DNA of 64,000 nt from Hyalangium minutum (GCF_000737315.1 NZ_JMCB01000015.1:124001-188000), one strand, 5' to 3'; shown: positions 6,373 through 44,915, counted from the stretch's first letter. Numbers and translations: made by a program. The notes: a model not told the origin generated them from the sequence alone.

Positions 6373-6449
6373 GGTTGCTCCTGTGTCCGGGGCTGGAGGA
6401 GCGGAGGGCGGGCTCTGGGGCTCGCCTCCCGTGCCTGCAGCCACGAGTC

Positions 6450-6508
6450 AGCGAGCGCCGTTGCAGAACCTGAGCCTGGCGGGGAACCCCGTTGCAGCGC
6501 TCCTCAGG
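6450..6508 (-). ncRNA. SAH riboswitch (cis-regulatory RNA) in the ahcY 5' UTR
   Basis: The minus strand reads CCUGAGGAGCGCUGCAACGGGGUUCCCCGCCAGGCUCAGG-UUCUG-CAACGGCGCUCGC. This matches the recalled SAH riboswitch consensus (GAGGAGCGCUGC..CAGGCUC..CAACGGCGCUC) and lies about 80 nt upstream of ahcY. Confidence 0.9.
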
Positions 6509-6580
6509 TGGGCGACACCCTAACGGAGGAGGGGCTCTGTTTTCCAGAGGGACGGCGGGGTGGGGTGACTGGGTGCCCGC

Positions 6581-38988: not shown

Positions 38989-40077
38989 GTGGCCCTCGTT
39001 CCCGACGCACTCCAGCAGCTCCGTACCTTCGCGAAGCGAAGGCTCGCCCATCCTCATGGCCAGCAGCTCTGCCACTACCTGGACGGCGTTGCCTGGGAGG
39101 AGGCCCTGCAGGACAGCCTCCTCGTCCCCGAGGACATGAGCCTCGGCTTCTACACACCCTTTTGGGCGGACTACACCGAAGCGCAGCGGCTCGCGCTGAA
39201 TCACTGGGTGTACATCCTGAAGTACTACCGCATCAGCGACGGCGAGCGCTTCGTCATCACCACCAACGAGTGCGTGGCGGACTTTCTCCAAGGGGTGGAT
39301 CCGGAGGTGGCCGGCCTGCTGCGCCTGGAGGCGGCAGAGGAGCGCGACCACATCGCCGCCTTCGAGCGGGTGCGTGCCGGGATTGTTCGCCACCACGGCT
39401 TCGAAGGTGTGCGCATGCCCGTCAAGCCCCTGCGTGCGCTCGTCACGTCACCGCGCACGCTGCACTTTCTCCTGAGGCACTTCGGCGCGGACTTCATCGT
39501 CACCTATTACCTGGGCCGCGGCCTCGTGAACCACATGGGCAAGGCCTTCGAGACGAAGGTGGCGGATCTGGACATCGGCCACCCTGCCTTCAAAGGCATC
39601 TCCCGGTTCCACACCGTGGACGAGAACCGCCACATGGCCGTCTCGCGGATGATGGCCGCGTGCACCTACGCGCTCGTCTCCCGGAGGAGTGAGGCCAGCC
39701 CCCTCTACGAGGTGCTCAACCAGAACCTGCGGGAAGCCGTTGTGGGCTACACGCTCTCGGACCGCCTCACCAAGGAGCAGGAGCGCGCCATGTCCCGGCT
39801 CGTGCTGCCTCAGATGCGCGCGCTGCGCGACGTTCCTACCCAGCGGCTCGAGGCCACCATCGACGCCCACTTCACTGGGCTCAGCGGCATGGAGCGCGCC
39901 AAGAACACGTACATGCCGCGCTTCAATCAGCGGCTCCTCGACCAGGCCTGTCTCTCCCCCAAGGAGAAGCGCGACCTGTTCGAGCTCGTCTGCTCGCTGC
40001 AGGGTAACCTGCGCTTCTTCCCCGAGGGCTACGTGCCTGGGGCAGAGGTCCCGGCGATGTCTCTCGAAGAGACATGA
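38989..40077 (+). CDS. Ferritin-like dimetal-carboxylate enzyme, AurF superfamily, with CylC-halogenase-type motifs
   Basis: YYRISDGERFVITTN, EAAEERDHIAAF, YYLGRGLVNHMGK and ISRFHTVDENRH. GTG start 6 nt after TAATCT. Confidence 0.8.
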   Translation: MALVPDALQQLRTFAKRRLAHPHGQQLCHYLDGVAWEEALQDSLLVPEDMSLGFYTPFWADYTEAQRLALNHWVYILKYYRISDGERFVITTNECVADFLQGVDPEVAGLLRLEAAEERDHIAAFERVRAGIVRHHGFEGVRMPVKPLRALVTSPRTLHFLLRHFGADFIVTYYLGRGLVNHMGKAFETKVADLDIGHPAFKGISRFHTVDENRHMAVSRMMAACTYALVSRRSEASPLYEVLNQNLREAVVGYTLSDRLTKEQERAMSRLVLPQMRALRDVPTQRLEATIDAHFTGLSGMERAKNTYMPRFNQRLLDQACLSPKEKRDLFELVCSLQGNLRFFPEGYVPGAEVPAMSLEET

Positions 40078-42062
40078 CACAGCTCCGTGGAGGCGCACTT
40101 CCACGCGCGAGTCTCGTGGTAGGAAGCGCTTCCCACCATGCGAATGGAACTCCGAGTCCTGTCTCTCTGTCTGACGGACGAGGTGGACTGGTCCATGGAC
40201 GTAGCGGCGTTCCGCGCACCCGAGAGCCTGGCCCCGCGCGCCCCGGGCCGGGCGGCCCGTGCATGCTGGAGGGAAGGAGCCCGTCGGGTCATCAGGAACA
40301 GGAGCGTCAGAGCCACCATCCAGGCGCTCCCGCTGCCGGCCGCCGCGCATCCTCCACCCTTTGGCGTCTCTAGCGCCGGAGGCTCCGCCGGTTCCGACGG
40401 CTCCGATGGCTCCGATGGAGGCGCCGGGGGACAGGTGAGGGGCTCCGTTGAAGGCTCCCTCTCCATCCGGAACACGGTATCGGTCACCACCAAGTGGGGA
40501 CGGCCCTCCATCCACTTCAGCAGGTTGGCCGTCGTGCCGGCGACGGGAACTGACGGACTCCCGGGACCCGCGAGGTAGTACTGGCTGTTCATCACGTAGA
40601 CGACCGTCCCGTCCGGTCCGAGCATCACGGGAGCCGAAGGAAGGCCCCAGGAGGACACCTGCTCCTCGACCCCAGCCGGTGAGCGGAGCCACACCTGATT
40701 CACGCCCCCTCCGAGTCGCGTGAAGGCCACCCAGCCCTTCGACAGCAAGAAGCTGGCGCTCCCCGGCGTGTCGGAGAGGACGTGCCGCTGGCCAGCTCGT
40801 AGGAGCACCGTCTCACTGACCTGGTTGGGTTTTTCGAGCAGGTAGACCTGATCGTCGCCCTCGGCGATGGGAAACTTCACAGTGCCCTCGGCTTCGGCAA
40901 ACACCTGCTCGACCTGCTCATTCCGGTAGCGAAGGAGCAGGTTTCTGGTACTGCCGAGGAGGGTTCCATCCTCGCCGAGCCAGTTCGCCGCAAATTCCGA
41001 CGGGAGAGAGGTCCTCGTCCCCGTGGAGAAATTGAGGAGGCCCCAGCGTTGATTGGCCTCGAAGTAGGCCAGGTGGCTTCCCGTGATCCGGTAATAGCGC
41101 GAGAGTGGGCTATAGAGGTTCCAGGAGAACTCGGCCAGGGAGCTGCGCTGCCCATCCTGGACCTGAAGGAGCTCCATGTTGCGGGTGCCCAAGATCGCTC
41201 CTCCTGGCATCAGGTGCCCGATGTCATAGGAGCGGTTGCAGCTCAGGCCGCAGATGTAGCTGTTGATCTGGAGGTTCTCCAGGAGCGTGTCGATCTGTCC
41301 CGAGGTTCGGTCCAGCACTCGGGCCCTGCGTTGCTCGTCGACGAAGAGCACCCGCTGCGCATCGAAGTCGATCACCGAGCCGGGGACGCTCACCACCGGA
41401 ACGAGCCGCCGACTGTTCTCCACATAGATGGATCGCACCACCTCGCTGCTGCTCTGGGAGCCGGAGAGGGCCCTCAGGCGGATACGAACCCATTTGCCCG
41501 CGTATTCCGCCAAGCACAGTTCCTGGTCGAGCCTACCCTTGGCACTCAGGCTCGGCGGGCCTGGGAGCGGAGTGCCAGGAGTCCCTCGGGGATCCACCAC
41601 CTCGAAGTTGGCACGCACCTCACATCCCTGGGGATGATCGTCTTCACAGCTCGCCGTGAGCCGGATCGAGGGCTGCAGCACGAGCCCACTGGCGGGCGTC
41701 GAGATTGTAAGCCGTGGCGGCCGATCGACCTGGAGCAGCCGTGAGACCCGGGCTTCCGTGCCATGAATATCCCGCGCCGTGACGGTGAGCAGGTGCTCTC
41801 CGTAAGGCACCCCATCGATGGAGAGGATCGCTCTCGGCCGGAGATCGACTGGCATCGGGAAGACCTTGCCCCCGAACTCCGCCTGCATCGAGCTGAGCTG
41901 GTACACGGACTGGACGGAGACCAGGATCTCGAAGTCACTCTCGATCAGGGTTTGAGCGGGCCAGTCGAGGCGGAGCTCGATCTGAGCTGAGGCGACTCCA
42001 CTGGCCAGCAGACAGAGTGGGAGCAGCAGCAAAGGGATGCGTCGGAGTGGAGCAGGTCGCAT
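40029..42062 (-). CDS. Secreted beta-rich protein with MYXO-CTERM-like sorting signal
   Basis: Signal peptide, Ig-like and propeller-like regions, PSEP linker, and GGGCAAAGSGSAWMVALTLLFLMTRR followed by an 83-aa extension. Confidence 0.75.
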   Translation of the reverse strand: MRPAPLRRIPLLLLPLCLLASGVASAQIELRLDWPAQTLIESDFEILVSVQSVYQLSSMQAEFGGKVFPMPVDLRPRAILSIDGVPYGEHLLTVTARDIHGTEARVSRLLQVDRPPRLTISTPASGLVLQPSIRLTASCEDDHPQGCEVRANFEVVDPRGTPGTPLPGPPSLSAKGRLDQELCLAEYAGKWVRIRLRALSGSQSSSEVVRSIYVENSRRLVPVVSVPGSVIDFDAQRVLFVDEQRRARVLDRTSGQIDTLLENLQINSYICGLSCNRSYDIGHLMPGGAILGTRNMELLQVQDGQRSSLAEFSWNLYSPLSRYYRITGSHLAYFEANQRWGLLNFSTGTRTSLPSEFAANWLGEDGTLLGSTRNLLLRYRNEQVEQVFAEAEGTVKFPIAEGDDQVYLLEKPNQVSETVLLRAGQRHVLSDTPGSASFLLSKGWVAFTRLGGGVNQVWLRSPAGVEEQVSSWGLPSAPVMLGPDGTVVYVMNSQYYLAGPGSPSVPVAGTTANLLKWMEGRPHLVVTDTVFRMEREPSTEPLTCPPAPPSEPSEPSEPAEPPALETPKGGGCAAAGSGSAWMVALTLLFLMTRRAPSLQHARAARPGARGARLSGARNAATSMDQSTSSVRQRDRTRSSIRMVGSASYHETRAWKCASTELCHVSSRDIAGTSAPGT

Positions 42063-42162
42063 GGACGGGCTCGAAGAAGCTTGACAGGGCCCGGCCGCCC
42101 GACCGGACACGATGGCCGGAGCTCCTGGCAAAAGTACCACACGGAGCACTCGGCCTCCAGGC

Positions 42163-42282
42163 GGCAGGTCTCTCCTTCGGCGGGACCGCTGGGTCTGCTA
42201 GAGTCCTGCGGTGGGGCGGCTCTGGGTGTGCTTCCTTCTCACCCTACTGATGGTAGTGCATCCGCTCTCCGCCCCGCTTTTT
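42163..42282 (+). ncRNA. Candidate structured leader RNA upstream of the RING-TerD gene (two stem/TCCTTC/hairpin units)
   Basis: Two units, each a stem enclosing TCCTTC plus a hairpin. The second unit is closed by a 9-bp stem followed by U5. Folded by eye only. Confidence 0.45.
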
Positions 42283-42299
42283 CCCCCCTCGGAGACGCC

Positions 42300-44915
42300 G
42301 TGACTTCGCTCACGCTCGATCTGCCCCAAGCCACGGGGACCCCCGCGGCCCTGTTGCTGCGCAAGACATCGCGCGTCTTTGTCCCCGCCGTCCCCCACGG
42401 CAAGCCGTCGGTCCAAGGGCGCGAGGGCGTGCGCGCGCTCGAGGCGGACCTGCTCGGGCTGGGCTACACGCTCTCGGGTCCGCTCCAGGATGCGCTCGCC
42501 GCGCTCCCCCCGGATGCGCTCGCGGAGCTGGGCCGATTCGTCTTCTCCACACTTGCCCAGATGCTGGGCCGGGATCGGGCCTTCGTGCCCCTCTTCACCG
42601 GCTTTCCTCACAGCGTCCCGCAGGACTCCGATTCGTTCTTCATCCAGCGCATGCGGGTGTGGCTCTTCCAGTCGCCCGAGCAGCCCTGCCTCCAGTGCGG
42701 GAAGGTGGCCACGGTGAAGGCGCTCGATCCCTGCGCCCATGCCGTCTGCACGAGCTGCTTCGATCCACGCCAGTTCAACGCATGTCCCATCTGCCACCGG
42801 CGCGTCTCTCCCGGGCAGCCCTACTTCCAGCCGGTGGCTCAACCCTCCACGCGGCGGCTCCATGTGCTCCGGCAAGGGCGCATGACCCGGTTGTCGCTCT
42901 CCACGGACCTGGACTCCGCCGCGCGGGAGTTGCTGGAGCGGCTGCTCTCCCGCGCCACCGTCCTTCGTCCGGATGAGCTCGAGGTGGTGGGCACGCTCGT
43001 GTTCCACTTGGGCCTGAAGGTGCTCGGCTGGCTTCCGCCGCGGATCCCCGTGAAGGAGACGCTGGCCCAGGTCGTCGGTGGCCTGCTGCGGCGTGAGCCG
43101 GCCGCCGCGGCGGATGTGCTGGGGGGCACCGCCGCGCATTTGAAGACCGCGACGGACTTCCTCCGCGTGCTCGTCGCGTGGGCGGGTGGCAACCCAGACC
43201 TCACGGTCAAGGTGCCCCTCAAGAGCTACCCTCGCTCGCTGCGGCGCGCGGTGCTGAAGGCCCTGGAGGCGCTCCCGCTGCTGAACCTCACCGAGGATGT
43301 GCACCGCCACCCGGGCCTCTGGAAGGCCATTGCGGGCCAGCTCCACGTCTTCGAGCGCTGGCAAGAGCACCCGAACGTCGCCCTGGCCTTTGCCACCTTG
43401 CGCGGCACGGTGGTGGAGCCCCATAGCGAATTCAGCCATGCGCTGTTGGCCCAGGCCCGCGAGTACCGTGACTCTTTCCTGCCCCAGGCTGTGGAGGGAG
43501 GGCTCACGATCCGCTTCCGCTCGTGGAGTTCGCAGGTGGAGGAGGCGCTGAAGCGGCGGGACATGAACGGTGTGTTGCGGCTGCTGCGCCAGCGTCCCGG
43601 GGAGCTGCTGCGCAGGCTGGACCATGTGGCCCGCACGGCTCTCAGGGATGAACAAGGGGTCTTCCACCAGCGAGAACTCGTCACCAGCCTGGAGGCGGTG
43701 GCACCGCGCGCGGCGCCTGCGCTGCTCCTCACCGCCACTGCACATCTGCGCCGCCGACATGCCCCCTTCGCGCGGCGGGTGTTCTTCCCCAAGGGAGAGG
43801 CCACCCACGCCTGGGGCACCGAGGACCGGCGGCCGCTGCTGCCCGGGGACGCCATCGGCGAGCTCGTGGGTCCCCTGGAGCGCGAGCTGCTCCGGCGTGC
43901 GGAGCGGCTCCCCACATTGCCGCAGGCGGTGCTGGACGAGGCGCTCGCTGACCTGCTCGTGCCCCTCGCGGAGAAGACCGCGTCCCGAGCGCTCGTGGCG
44001 GTGCCTCGTGGGAGCGTGCTGGACCTGCCGCAAGGCGAGCACCTGCGCTTCTTCGTGCACTGGACGGAGCCCGCGGGGACGCGCGTGGATCTCGATCTGT
44101 CCGTGGCGCTCTACGACGCGAAGTGGTGGCTCGTCGATCTGTGCGACTACACGAACCTGCGCCTCGCGAACGACGCGGCCGTGCACTCGGGAGACATCAC
44201 CTCGGGGGCTCCTCCTCTGGGAGGCGCCGAGTTCCTGGACGTGCACGCGCCGGCGCTGCTGAAGAAGGGCGTACGCTACGCGGTGCCGGTGATCTTCTCC
44301 TTCAACAGCGTGTCCTTTGACCGCATGCAGGATGCCTTCGCGGGCTTCATGGTGCGCGACAGAAAGGACGGTCCTCACTTCGATGCGCGCGAGGTCGAGC
44401 AGCGCTTCGACCTGCAGGGGAACGCGAAGATCGCCGTGCCGCTCATCATCGACCTCGAGGCACGCAAGCTGCGCTGGGTGGATGTGAAGGTGCCGGCCGA
44501 CGACCTCTTCCACAGCGTCGCGCGCGCCCGGGGCGATCTTGCCCACTTGGGGAAGGACACCCTGGCCTACTTCGGGACGGGCGCGAGGCCGACCCTCTGG
44601 GAGCTGGCCTGTCTGCACGCGGCGGCGCGCACCCGCACGGTGCACGTGCGCCGCCGGGACGGGAACGTGGTGGTTCTCACCCGTGCACCCGACGAGGACA
44701 CCCGCCACTTCCTCTGGAGGCTCCGCCGCCTGGAGGGCGCCCGTGGGGTGCCACGGCTGACACTTCAGCCCGCGCCCGCTTTCTTCGCGGGACTCTCGGA
44801 CGAGCCCGCTCTGCCCCAGGGCAGCGAGGGCTATGCGCTCCGCTTCCGTCACACGGAGGCGGATCAGGTCAGGCGGCTCGCAGCGGGCGATCTCGTCGCG
44901 GCGCTGCGGCCCTAG
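42300..44915 (+). CDS. Prokaryotic RING finger + TROVE-like helical + TerD-domain protein (MXAN_6230/SCO0854-like, Prok-RING_4 type)
   Basis: GTG with GGAGA SD. C-x2-C-x11-C-x-H-x2-C-x2-C-x8-C-x2-C at 42687-42794, RPGELLRRLD, and TerD motifs DLDLS, HSGD, EFLDV. Confidence 0.85.
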   Translation: MTSLTLDLPQATGTPAALLLRKTSRVFVPAVPHGKPSVQGREGVRALEADLLGLGYTLSGPLQDALAALPPDALAELGRFVFSTLAQMLGRDRAFVPLFTGFPHSVPQDSDSFFIQRMRVWLFQSPEQPCLQCGKVATVKALDPCAHAVCTSCFDPRQFNACPICHRRVSPGQPYFQPVAQPSTRRLHVLRQGRMTRLSLSTDLDSAARELLERLLSRATVLRPDELEVVGTLVFHLGLKVLGWLPPRIPVKETLAQVVGGLLRREPAAAADVLGGTAAHLKTATDFLRVLVAWAGGNPDLTVKVPLKSYPRSLRRAVLKALEALPLLNLTEDVHRHPGLWKAIAGQLHVFERWQEHPNVALAFATLRGTVVEPHSEFSHALLAQAREYRDSFLPQAVEGGLTIRFRSWSSQVEEALKRRDMNGVLRLLRQRPGELLRRLDHVARTALRDEQGVFHQRELVTSLEAVAPRAAPALLLTATAHLRRRHAPFARRVFFPKGEATHAWGTEDRRPLLPGDAIGELVGPLERELLRRAERLPTLPQAVLDEALADLLVPLAEKTASRALVAVPRGSVLDLPQGEHLRFFVHWTEPAGTRVDLDLSVALYDAKWWLVDLCDYTNLRLANDAAVHSGDITSGAPPLGGAEFLDVHAPALLKKGVRYAVPVIFSFNSVSFDRMQDAFAGFMVRDRKDGPHFDAREVEQRFDLQGNAKIAVPLIIDLEARKLRWVDVKVPADDLFHSVARARGDLAHLGKDTLAYFGTGARPTLWELACLHAAARTRTVHVRRRDGNVVVLTRAPDEDTRHFLWRLRRLEGARGVPRLTLQPAPAFFAGLSDEPALPQGSEGYALRFRHTEADQVRRLAAGDLVAALRP

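Follow-up and report, generated by a model that had tools for sequence, protein, structure and literature searches.

What kind of element occupies the region upstream of the gene at positions 42300-44915 (plus strand) of the Hyalangium minutum DNA examined here, a stretch of 64,000 nucleotides from contig JMCB01000015.1 (assembly GCA_000737315.1) that we call the window? The gene begins with a GTG codon and encodes an 871-amino-acid member of the MXAN_6230/SCO0854 family, referred to below as the RING-TerD family, and the intergenic region before it spans 237 nt (42063-42299). The original prediction placed a structured leader RNA in this region, composed of two similar units that each present TCCTTC, and proposed that this RNA is the cognate ligand of a TROVE-like protein and/or an attenuator. 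The stretches and coordinates quoted in that prediction are all correct. The questions that remain are whether an RNA structure is selected at this site, how far it extends, and how it might serve the gene that follows.

A Covarying Hairpin Precedes RING-TerD Genes

An alignment of 30 myxobacterial homologues of the protein was used to fetch 80 loci from species-representative genomes. This collection includes 13 loci from Myxococcaceae and ~20 from MAGs of the Haliangiales/Kofleriaceae type, along with loci from Streptomyces, Planobispora, and Solirubrobacter. When the leader from the window was used as a BLAST query, all 80 loci showed a hit at the equivalent position, just 5′ of the gene. 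The aligned region spans 42213 to ~42282, and its identity is 70-92% where the whole core aligned, whereas the corresponding proteins are only 41-78% identical. In total, the hairpin described below is present on the gene's strand and 5′ of the gene in 84 of 84 genomic homologues examined from Myxococcota, Actinomycetota, and Deinococcus. The element is likewise present in Micromonospora.

The hairpin core (42213-42275, extendable to 42210-42278) corresponds to the second predicted unit together with its outer stem, and both of these helices are real. The element is ~63-80 nt in length and consists of two helices, P1 and P2. P1 pairs GGGGCGG (42213-42219) with CCGCCCC (42269-42275) in the RNAalifold consensus, and covariation is evident as changes from G-C to A-U and U-A. 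In the window, this stem can be extended to 10 bp (42210-42219 with 42269-42278) by the pairs G42210-U42278, G42211-C42277, and U42212-G42276. P2 pairs GGGUGUGCU (42224-42232) with AGUGCAUCC (42255-42263) and encloses CTTCCTTC; it also contains covarying pairs, and its nucleotides A42255 and G42256 are invariant.

Much of the sequence conservation falls in the internal loop and the base of the apical loop, as judged by column counts from 95 distinct sequences. The internal loop between the two helices is 4 × 5 nt in size, with CUCU on its 5′ side (42220-42223) and GCUCU on its 3′ side (42264-42268), and its invariant strands are pyrimidine. C42220 is invariant, U42221 and C42222 are nearly so, and the CUCU of the 3′ side is invariant or nearly invariant. 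The apical loop begins with the invariant segment UCCUUCUC (42233-42240), which opens with UUCCUUCUC, and identity reaches 95 or 94 of 95 sequences at 42233-42238, 92 at 42239, and 76 at 42240. Together with C42231 and U42232, this segment makes up a CUUCCUUCUC core, within which UUCCUUCU resides. The loop then passes through a variable part (42241-42251) whose length differs by lineage and which holds a nonconserved ATG at 42250, and it ends with GGU (42252-42254; G or C at 42252, G in 79 of 95 at 42253, and U in 80 of 95 at 42254). A CUAC/GUAG hairpin that had been drawn within the second unit is not conserved and falls in the variable part of the loop, and its GUAG half closes P2. Overall, ~25 positions are invariant or nearly invariant among the 95 sequences, and those that are unpaired are almost all pyrimidines.

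Two smaller details concern the loops. At 42223/42264, the closing position of the internal loop, the 95 sequences carry U-G in 19 cases, C-A in 55, and C-G in 9, an alternation that suggests conservation of a wobble-type geometry. In addition, an extra CCCC-GCAA-GGGG hairpin with a GCAA tetraloop sits in the apical loop of some Haliangiales-like loci and was noted in L021, L022, L026, and L033, which indicates that the variable part of the loop tolerates insertions.

Support for the structure comes from both folding and covariation. The hairpin is the MFE and the centroid structure of 42210-42278 (-36.9 kcal/mol), with z = -5.07 relative to dinucleotide shuffles, none of which (0 of 200) folds as well. 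In a MAFFT alignment of 75 distinct sequences (A2), the RNAalifold consensus consists of P1 and P2, 93.5% of the cells in these helices are paired, and 10 pairs have changed on both sides. An alignment of 101 hits (A5) built with model R1, our model of the motif, gives 97.6% paired cells and nine pairs with changes on both sides, which account for 116 such cells. In neither case did any of 500 shuffles score as high, and controls in which the pairing partner was slid along the alignment were paired in only 40-61% (A2) or in 38-65% (A5) of cells. For example, the counts at three covarying pairs are C-G 46 and U-A 39, G-C 68 and A-U 19, and G-C 61 and U-A 17. In Deinococcus, the two P1 strands (CGCCGCUGG and CCAGCGGCG) are wholly unlike those of the other phyla in sequence, and their pairing is kept. 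Thus, the structured RNA upstream of the RING-TerD gene is selected and is not a chance fold, as had been proposed, with UUCCUUCU lying in an invariant core and both helices covarying.

The folded species can be assigned to one strand. The reverse complement of the hairpin folds to only -25.5 kcal/mol, and the frequent G-U pairs together with the asymmetry in model scores (73.5 bits on the plus strand versus 8.5 on the minus strand) indicate that the plus-strand RNA is the form that folds. These G-U pairs make the structure strand-specific and argue against an operator or other inverted repeat that acts as DNA. A coding feature in the same place might be suspected from a long ORF that stays open back to 42081, or from a 17-codon uORF (ATG 42250 to TGA 42303) whose stop codon overlaps the GTG start. 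However, the conservation lacks three-base periodicity and the loop varies in length by lineage. The uORF or leader peptide was rejected, as its ATG belongs to the variable part of the loop and lacks conservation. An N-terminal extension of the protein was also rejected, because, in the GTG-start protein, the NCBIfam match starts at residue 16, after the element, and codon periodicity is absent; moreover, Haliangiales-like proteins start just past the hairpin. A DNA-level or coding explanation therefore carries very little probability and can be regarded as effectively excluded.

Promoter Position Predicts That the Hairpin Begins the mRNA

A conserved promoter box precedes the hairpin. In the window, this is the extended -10 box TGcTAGAGT (42196-42204, plus strand), with TG at 42196-42197 and TAGAGT at 42199-42204. 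A TANNNT box ends 5-12 nt 5′ of P1 in 110 of 111 loci, and the TGn extension is present in the Myxococcota loci inspected. Promoter geometry places the predicted transcription start region at 42210-42212, or 6-8 nt 3′ of the -10 box, and the hairpin would therefore form the extreme 5′ end of the mRNA. From this arrangement, we infer with good support that the gene's own transcript, initiated at a sigma-70-type promoter, opens with the hairpin.

Published data for Streptomyces coelicolor bear on this assignment. The primary TSS of SCO0854 was mapped by dRNA-seq to 899420, which is 118 nt 5′ of the coding sequence at 899538 (Jeong et al. 2016, PMC4895711), and no other TSS is listed for this gene (PMC4895711, Supplementary Dataset 1). 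When leaders from Actinomycetota are measured from the first base of P1, their predicted lengths are 98-130 nt with a median of ~108 nt. The 118-nt leader of SCO0854 is consistent with a start at P1.

The region originally described as the first unit (42163-42199, plus strand) is not part of the RNA motif. Its fold is equaled by 82 of 200 shuffles (z = -0.10), and its MFE structure differs from the one that had been drawn. Among the nearest genomes, BLAST conservation begins at ~42194 in most cases and at ~42172 in one, and it never reaches the 5′ strand of this unit. Model R1 has no hit there, and the unit is not conserved in L001-L013 beyond the -10 region. Because it lies upstream of and across the -10 box, with its 3′ strand overlapping 42196-42204, we conclude that it is promoter DNA that falls outside the transcript and that includes a weak -35 area (~42176-42182) and the start of the extended -10 element. 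Given that neither this unit nor the CUAC/GUAG hairpin is conserved, the notion that the same architecture occurs twice in the window fails, and the sharing of TCCTTC, once taken as the sign of a motif, is a coincidence. Although both pairings can be drawn, and although the real motif does occur as a full tandem pair in Deinococcus yavapaiensis, a leader of two like hairpins that spans 42163-42282 and presents TCCTTC twice is hardly credible and is effectively excluded.

Other sequences upstream of the -10 box were noted. A perfect TTGACA hexamer is present at 42081-42086 (plus strand) with no usable -10 box at a distance of 16-18 nt; a consensus scan called no promoter at this hexamer, and it may have arisen by chance. 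Streptomyces loci (e.g., L070, L035, and L058) have a recurring (G)TGGC(A/G) element, placed at the -35 position and preceded by an A/T-rich stretch, ~35 nt upstream of the -10 box, and similar strings (TGGCGG or TCGGCG) occur in Myxococcaceae. This element may represent a shared -35 region or a regulator site.

The Motif Accompanies a Single Gene Family

A search of the 64-kb window with model R1 yields one hit of 73.5 bits, the next-best score being 15.9 and the best on the reverse strand 8.5. Over 849 kb of related loci, the same model finds one hit per locus, always on the gene's strand and with scores of 48-85 bits. The exception is the pair in D. yavapaiensis (L207), where two full tandem copies (2824-2899 and 2901-2982, scoring 48.5 and 55.7 bits) lie downstream of a single extended -10 promoter and ahead of the RING-TerD gene, and CUUUU follows the second of them.

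The association was also examined in the reverse direction by scanning metagenomes with a degenerate DNA pattern and then filtering the matches with model R1, an approach whose reach is limited by the stringency of the pattern. Of 120 stretches recovered, 32 are true R1 hits (at least 57 bits) and 88 are chance matches. All 29 true hits with sufficient downstream DNA precede a member of the family as judged by hmmsearch, and the remaining three are cut by contig ends 15-87 nt past the motif. Four pattern matches in viral contigs had raised the possibility that phages carry the motif, and all four proved spurious when scored with model R1. Away from the RING-TerD genes, the motif was not found in the rest of the window, in the 849 kb of flanking DNA, or among the metagenome pattern hits.

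The family itself has confirmed matches in 301 GTDB species in one pattern-limited scan, and it is common in Streptomyces and myxobacteria. The gene is solitary, and its flanking genes vary between lineages. The window's copy is monocistronic, flanked by a divergent neighbor on its 5′ side and a convergent neighbor on its 3′ side. Judged from these sequence comparisons, the RNA and the gene have been transmitted as a unit in three phyla. Such co-inheritance amid differing neighbors argues against dependence on a host factor specific to any one lineage.

Downstream Layout Differs among Lineages

In the window, P1 is followed directly by a U5 run (42278-42282), which ends 17 nt before the GTG at 42300, as had been stated. 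This run belongs to a pyrimidine-rich 3′ tail that continues through a C-rich spacer (42278-42289, plus strand) and that, together with P1, resembles an intrinsic terminator or attenuator. A Shine-Dalgarno (SD) sequence, GGAG (42291-42294), lies 5 nt 5′ of the start codon and has no predicted pairing to the hairpin. This layout is characteristic of Myxococcaceae, in which a U-rich run and GGAG are followed by a start codon 23-47 nt past P1, and in which 4-7 T residues occur within the 9 nt after P1 in 14 of 14 cases. In contrast, most Actinomycetota have only 0-4 T residues in this interval. Their layout has a spacer with a median of 36 nt that usually lacks a U run, an SD of the GGGGGA type, and often a TTG start codon, and the distance from the element to the start codon is 30-100 nt in most of them. 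The 15 nt past P1 are 75% pyrimidine, compared with 48% in a control segment.

A third layout is found in Haliangiales-like loci (L014-L028, L041, L045, L060, L110, L161, and similar ones), where an ATG occurs 4-20 nt past P1 and no SD is present. Such genes would need some SD-independent route of initiation, and this beside a very stable hairpin.

A consensus terminator scan made no call at P1 and the U run, because the "loop" enclosed by the stem exceeds 8 nt. The window resembles an intrinsic terminator here in that the 10-bp G+C-rich stem leads directly into U5 within the 5′ UTR. The differences are that this stem encloses a 49-nt structured insert rather than a loop of 3-8 nt, that the U run is missing in most Actinomycetota, and that sequence conservation is far above what a terminator needs. 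Thus, the earlier suggestion of an attenuator fits the window and other Myxococcaceae, where P1 is followed by a U run, but it cannot be extended to the motif in general.

Switching between alternative structures is not predicted. Partition-function folding of 107 whole leaders gives a pairing probability of ~0.9 for P1, and neither alternative pairing nor SD sequestration is predicted for these leaders, with the probability of pairing between the ribosome-binding region and the element being 0.00-0.03 in three lineage groups. There is good support from this modeling for the view that the hairpin folds constitutively and is not a switch. Pairing of the loop in cis with a GAGAAGGAAG site was considered and rejected, as one near-match was found downstream among 95 loci and none in the 400 nt upstream.

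A stable hairpin at or near +1 could guard the mRNA from 5′-end-dependent decay, and the pyrimidine-rich loops and 3′ tail might also, or instead, recruit a general factor such as ribosomal protein S1 (for SD-independent initiation), Rho, or a cold-shock protein. The Haliangiales-like genes, with an ATG so close to the hairpin and no SD, would fit this arrangement well. However, a generic stabilizer or S1 site requires neither ~25 invariant nucleotides nor confinement to a single gene family, and the searches of the window, the 849 kb of flanks, and the metagenome pattern hits found the motif nowhere else. We consider a purely structural or host-factor leader unlikely.

Comparison with Known Structured RNAs

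Searches against Rfam 15 gave no match at E ≤ 10 for 41000-43500 of the window, and no match at E ≤ 1 for four loci from Streptomyces, Haliangiales, Planobispora, and Solirubrobacter. At gathering thresholds, the whole window contains only an SAH riboswitch elsewhere. As no Rfam 15 family matches, the hairpin is a new RNA motif and a candidate for a new Rfam family.

One precedent is the Ro60 (Rsr)/YrlA system, in which a small structured RNA adjoins, on the same strand, the gene that encodes a helical RNA-binding protein of the ring type. The genes for bacterial Y RNAs lie no more than 4 kb from rsr and share its strand, and in M. smegmatis the RNA is located 5′ of rsr (PMC4201824). The 5′ and 3′ ends of Y RNAs pair into a stem that encloses loops (PMC4201824), and the hairpin resembles them in that its terminal stem also encloses loops. 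It shares the strand of the gene that it directly precedes, whose product is TROVE-like by fold but has no match to Pfam TROVE. However, Y RNAs are 80-130 nt in length with a long stem carrying the Ro site and a large internal loop, whereas the hairpin is ~63-80 nt with a P1 of 7-10 bp. It lacks the bulged Ro-binding site, and it lacks the tRNA-like domain and the GNCGAAN0-1G motif. CGAA is absent from 42210-42282, ARAGORN detects no tRNA-like structure in the element, and the Rfam Y RNA models do not match. Furthermore, the hairpin is an mRNA 5′ leader and not a separate gene. By the features of size, structure, and sequence tested, it is not a Y RNA.

Autoregulatory leaders, such as those of ribosomal protein genes and the thrS operator, offer a second precedent. 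They share with the hairpin a conserved 5′ UTR structure confined to the gene of a presumed RNA-binding protein, and in some lineages the hairpin is similarly placed next to or over the translation start. The comparison differs in that binding is putative here and in that the hairpin does not evidently mimic another cellular RNA. Mimicry of the 3′ end of 16S rRNA (h45 plus the anti-SD tail) was considered and rejected, as local alignment with a 16S sequence was no better than that of dinucleotide shuffles (200-844 of 2,000 as good).

The motif also resembles the orphan riboswitch candidates in the Breaker and Weinberg collections, being intergenic and covarying with invariant loop nucleotides, a fixed gene association, and a downstream region that varies by lineage. 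Unlike these candidates, it has no Rfam 15 match and no predicted platform for alternative pairing. The main texts of the 26- and 50-genome surveys from the Breaker laboratory, one of which covered Streptomyces avermitilis, mention neither the motif nor RING or tellurite-related genes, and TerD is mentioned in none of the papers retrieved by our search of the riboswitch-survey literature.

Could the hairpin be an aptamer for a small molecule or ion tied to TerD or RING function, such as a metal ion or a derivative of a nucleotide? P1, stabilized by the ligand, would then cause termination in Myxococcaceae or to block initiation in the Haliangiales-like lineages. The strict 5′ UTR location before one gene family across phyla, the clustering of invariant nucleotides in the internal loop and the base of the apical loop between covarying helices, and the lineage-dependent downstream region all accord with such a role. 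Tandem copies like those in Deinococcus occur in some riboswitches, and a universal ligand would fit co-inheritance across phyla. Among the hallmarks of a riboswitch, though, a 5′ UTR structure backed by covariation is present, whereas a mutually exclusive platform is not predicted, and P1 is predicted to be largely formed without ligand. The architecture is limited to a two-helix hairpin, and the gene offers no clue to a metabolite. The conserved unpaired bases are nearly all pyrimidines, which is unusual for known aptamers. On balance, we doubt that the hairpin is a riboswitch.

Domains of the RING-TerD Protein

In the literature collection searched, no published work on the MXAN_6230/SCO0854 family was found. 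Residues 16-866 of the 871-amino-acid protein match the NCBIfam model NF041916 with 1041.5 bits (cut-off 600), and Pfam Prok-RING_4 (PF14447) matches with 59.8 bits. The closest named proteins, from Hyalangium species and a Myxococcus sp. isolate, are 76-79% identical. AlphaFold (pLDDT 87.8) predicts an N-terminal domain, a RING domain (residues 127-175), a helical domain (~196-560), a TerD domain (~575-735), and a C-terminal alpha/beta domain. TerD crystal structures match the model with E = 1e-5. Of 69 invariant residues, 14 are arginine, in keeping with a candidate RNA-binding protein.

The helical domain is of particular interest in view of the TROVE-like repeats assumed in the original prediction. 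Modeled alone (pLDDT 91.2) and compared with the PDB by Foldseek, it has one hit with a probability of 1.0, which is Ro60 bound to misfolded pre-5S rRNA (9nep_A; E = 3.9e-3, TM 0.36). This is the only Ro60 entry hit, and generic HEAT proteins score E ≥ 0.06. Against a viral library, the top hits include a phage protein with a TROVE domain (E = 6.9e-3, TM 0.46), along with three phage proteins related to it. However, none of 56 family members has a Pfam TROVE match, and the protein differs from Ro60 in that it lacks a vWA domain and has RING and TerD domains instead. The idea of a TROVE-like protein thus gains modest support at the level of the predicted fold, where the helical domain resembles Ro60/TROVE weakly but specifically, and none at the level of domain profiles.

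Two phage proteins in BFVD are the best structural matches to the helical domain and outrank the annotated phage TROVE protein. These are A0A248SJK3 (844 aa; E = 7e-7, TM 0.64) and H6SUA9 from Campylobacter virus IBB35 (695 aa; E = 1e-4, TM 0.45). On the strength of these model comparisons, they may be phage relatives of the domain.

Possible Partners and Functions of the Hairpin

We tentatively favor the possibility that the hairpin is a cognate RNA ligand or autoregulatory operator of the protein encoded downstream, a reading that we hold at somewhat less than even confidence and that draws on analogy with the systems described above. The gene's own product is the most economical partner for the RNA, because the two are co-inherited across three phyla, the hairpin is predicted to be constitutively stable and to display invariant pyrimidines, and the protein has a Ro-like domain. 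The protein would bind the helix and the exposed pyrimidine strands and thereby exert feedback on its own expression. In Myxococcaceae, including the window, the output could operate through the terminator-like P1 and U run. In the Haliangiales-like lineages, the bound hairpin might occlude the start codon located 4-20 nt past P1. Termination at the U run would release an RNA of ~70 nt that might remain associated with the protein, in the manner of Y RNAs and Ro60.

Several observations count against recognition by the gene's own protein. The resemblance to TROVE proteins is weak (TM 0.36-0.46), and the hairpin has none of the Y RNA features that serve Ro binding or resemble tRNA. For most Actinomycetota, no direct route from binding to output is apparent, because 30-100 nt separate the element from the start codon and there is no U run. 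At the SCO0854 leader, the catalogue of S. coelicolor sRNAs has no entry, and the ratios of ribosome footprints to mRNA for SCO0854 are similar to those of neighboring genes. Finally, invariant nucleotides outside the helices would be just as typical of an aptamer in a riboswitch.

A more elaborate proposal, which we regard as speculative and rather improbable, is that the RNA and protein constitute a self-contained RNP module analogous to Ro60 and its Y RNA. Such a module would combine the RING/TROVE-like/TerD protein with a co-inherited, dedicated RNA of ~70 nt that has pyrimidine loops and corresponds to the 5′ terminus of the protein's mRNA. This RNA would set the level of the protein, through attenuation or occlusion of the start site, and then, once freed at the U run, would remain attached and so gate or target what the protein does. 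This activity might, for instance, couple RNA surveillance to a RING-type ligase or to calcium or stress sensing by TerD.

If the protein does bind this RNA, the family would represent a second bacterial lineage of TROVE-like RNPs, one that is joined to RING and TerD domains and that would link RNA surveillance to ubiquitin-like machinery or to calcium/tellurite stress machinery. If the hairpin were a riboswitch, its ligand would be a direct clue to the signal that TerD/RING proteins answer. The co-inherited structured RNA provides an experimental handle on this uncharacterized family, and a seed alignment (A5) and model R1 of the RNA motif exist.

Additional Features of the Locus

The divergent neighbor of the RING-TerD gene begins with an ATG at 42062 on the minus strand and has a signal-peptide-like N terminus. 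This gene (40029-42062, minus strand) encodes 677 amino acids that include a region of PSE repeats, and Pfam and NCBIfam scans gave no match. In one Streptomyces locus (L206, 8706-9731), a gene for an RNase_T-family exonuclease is located 3′ of the RING-TerD gene on the same strand; this neighbor is missing in S. coelicolor, the window, Deinococcus, and Micromonospora. The SAH (S-adenosylhomocysteine) riboswitch aptamer mentioned above is located at 6446-6511 of the window (minus strand) and matches RF01057 with 66.5 bits, compared with a gathering score of 37.
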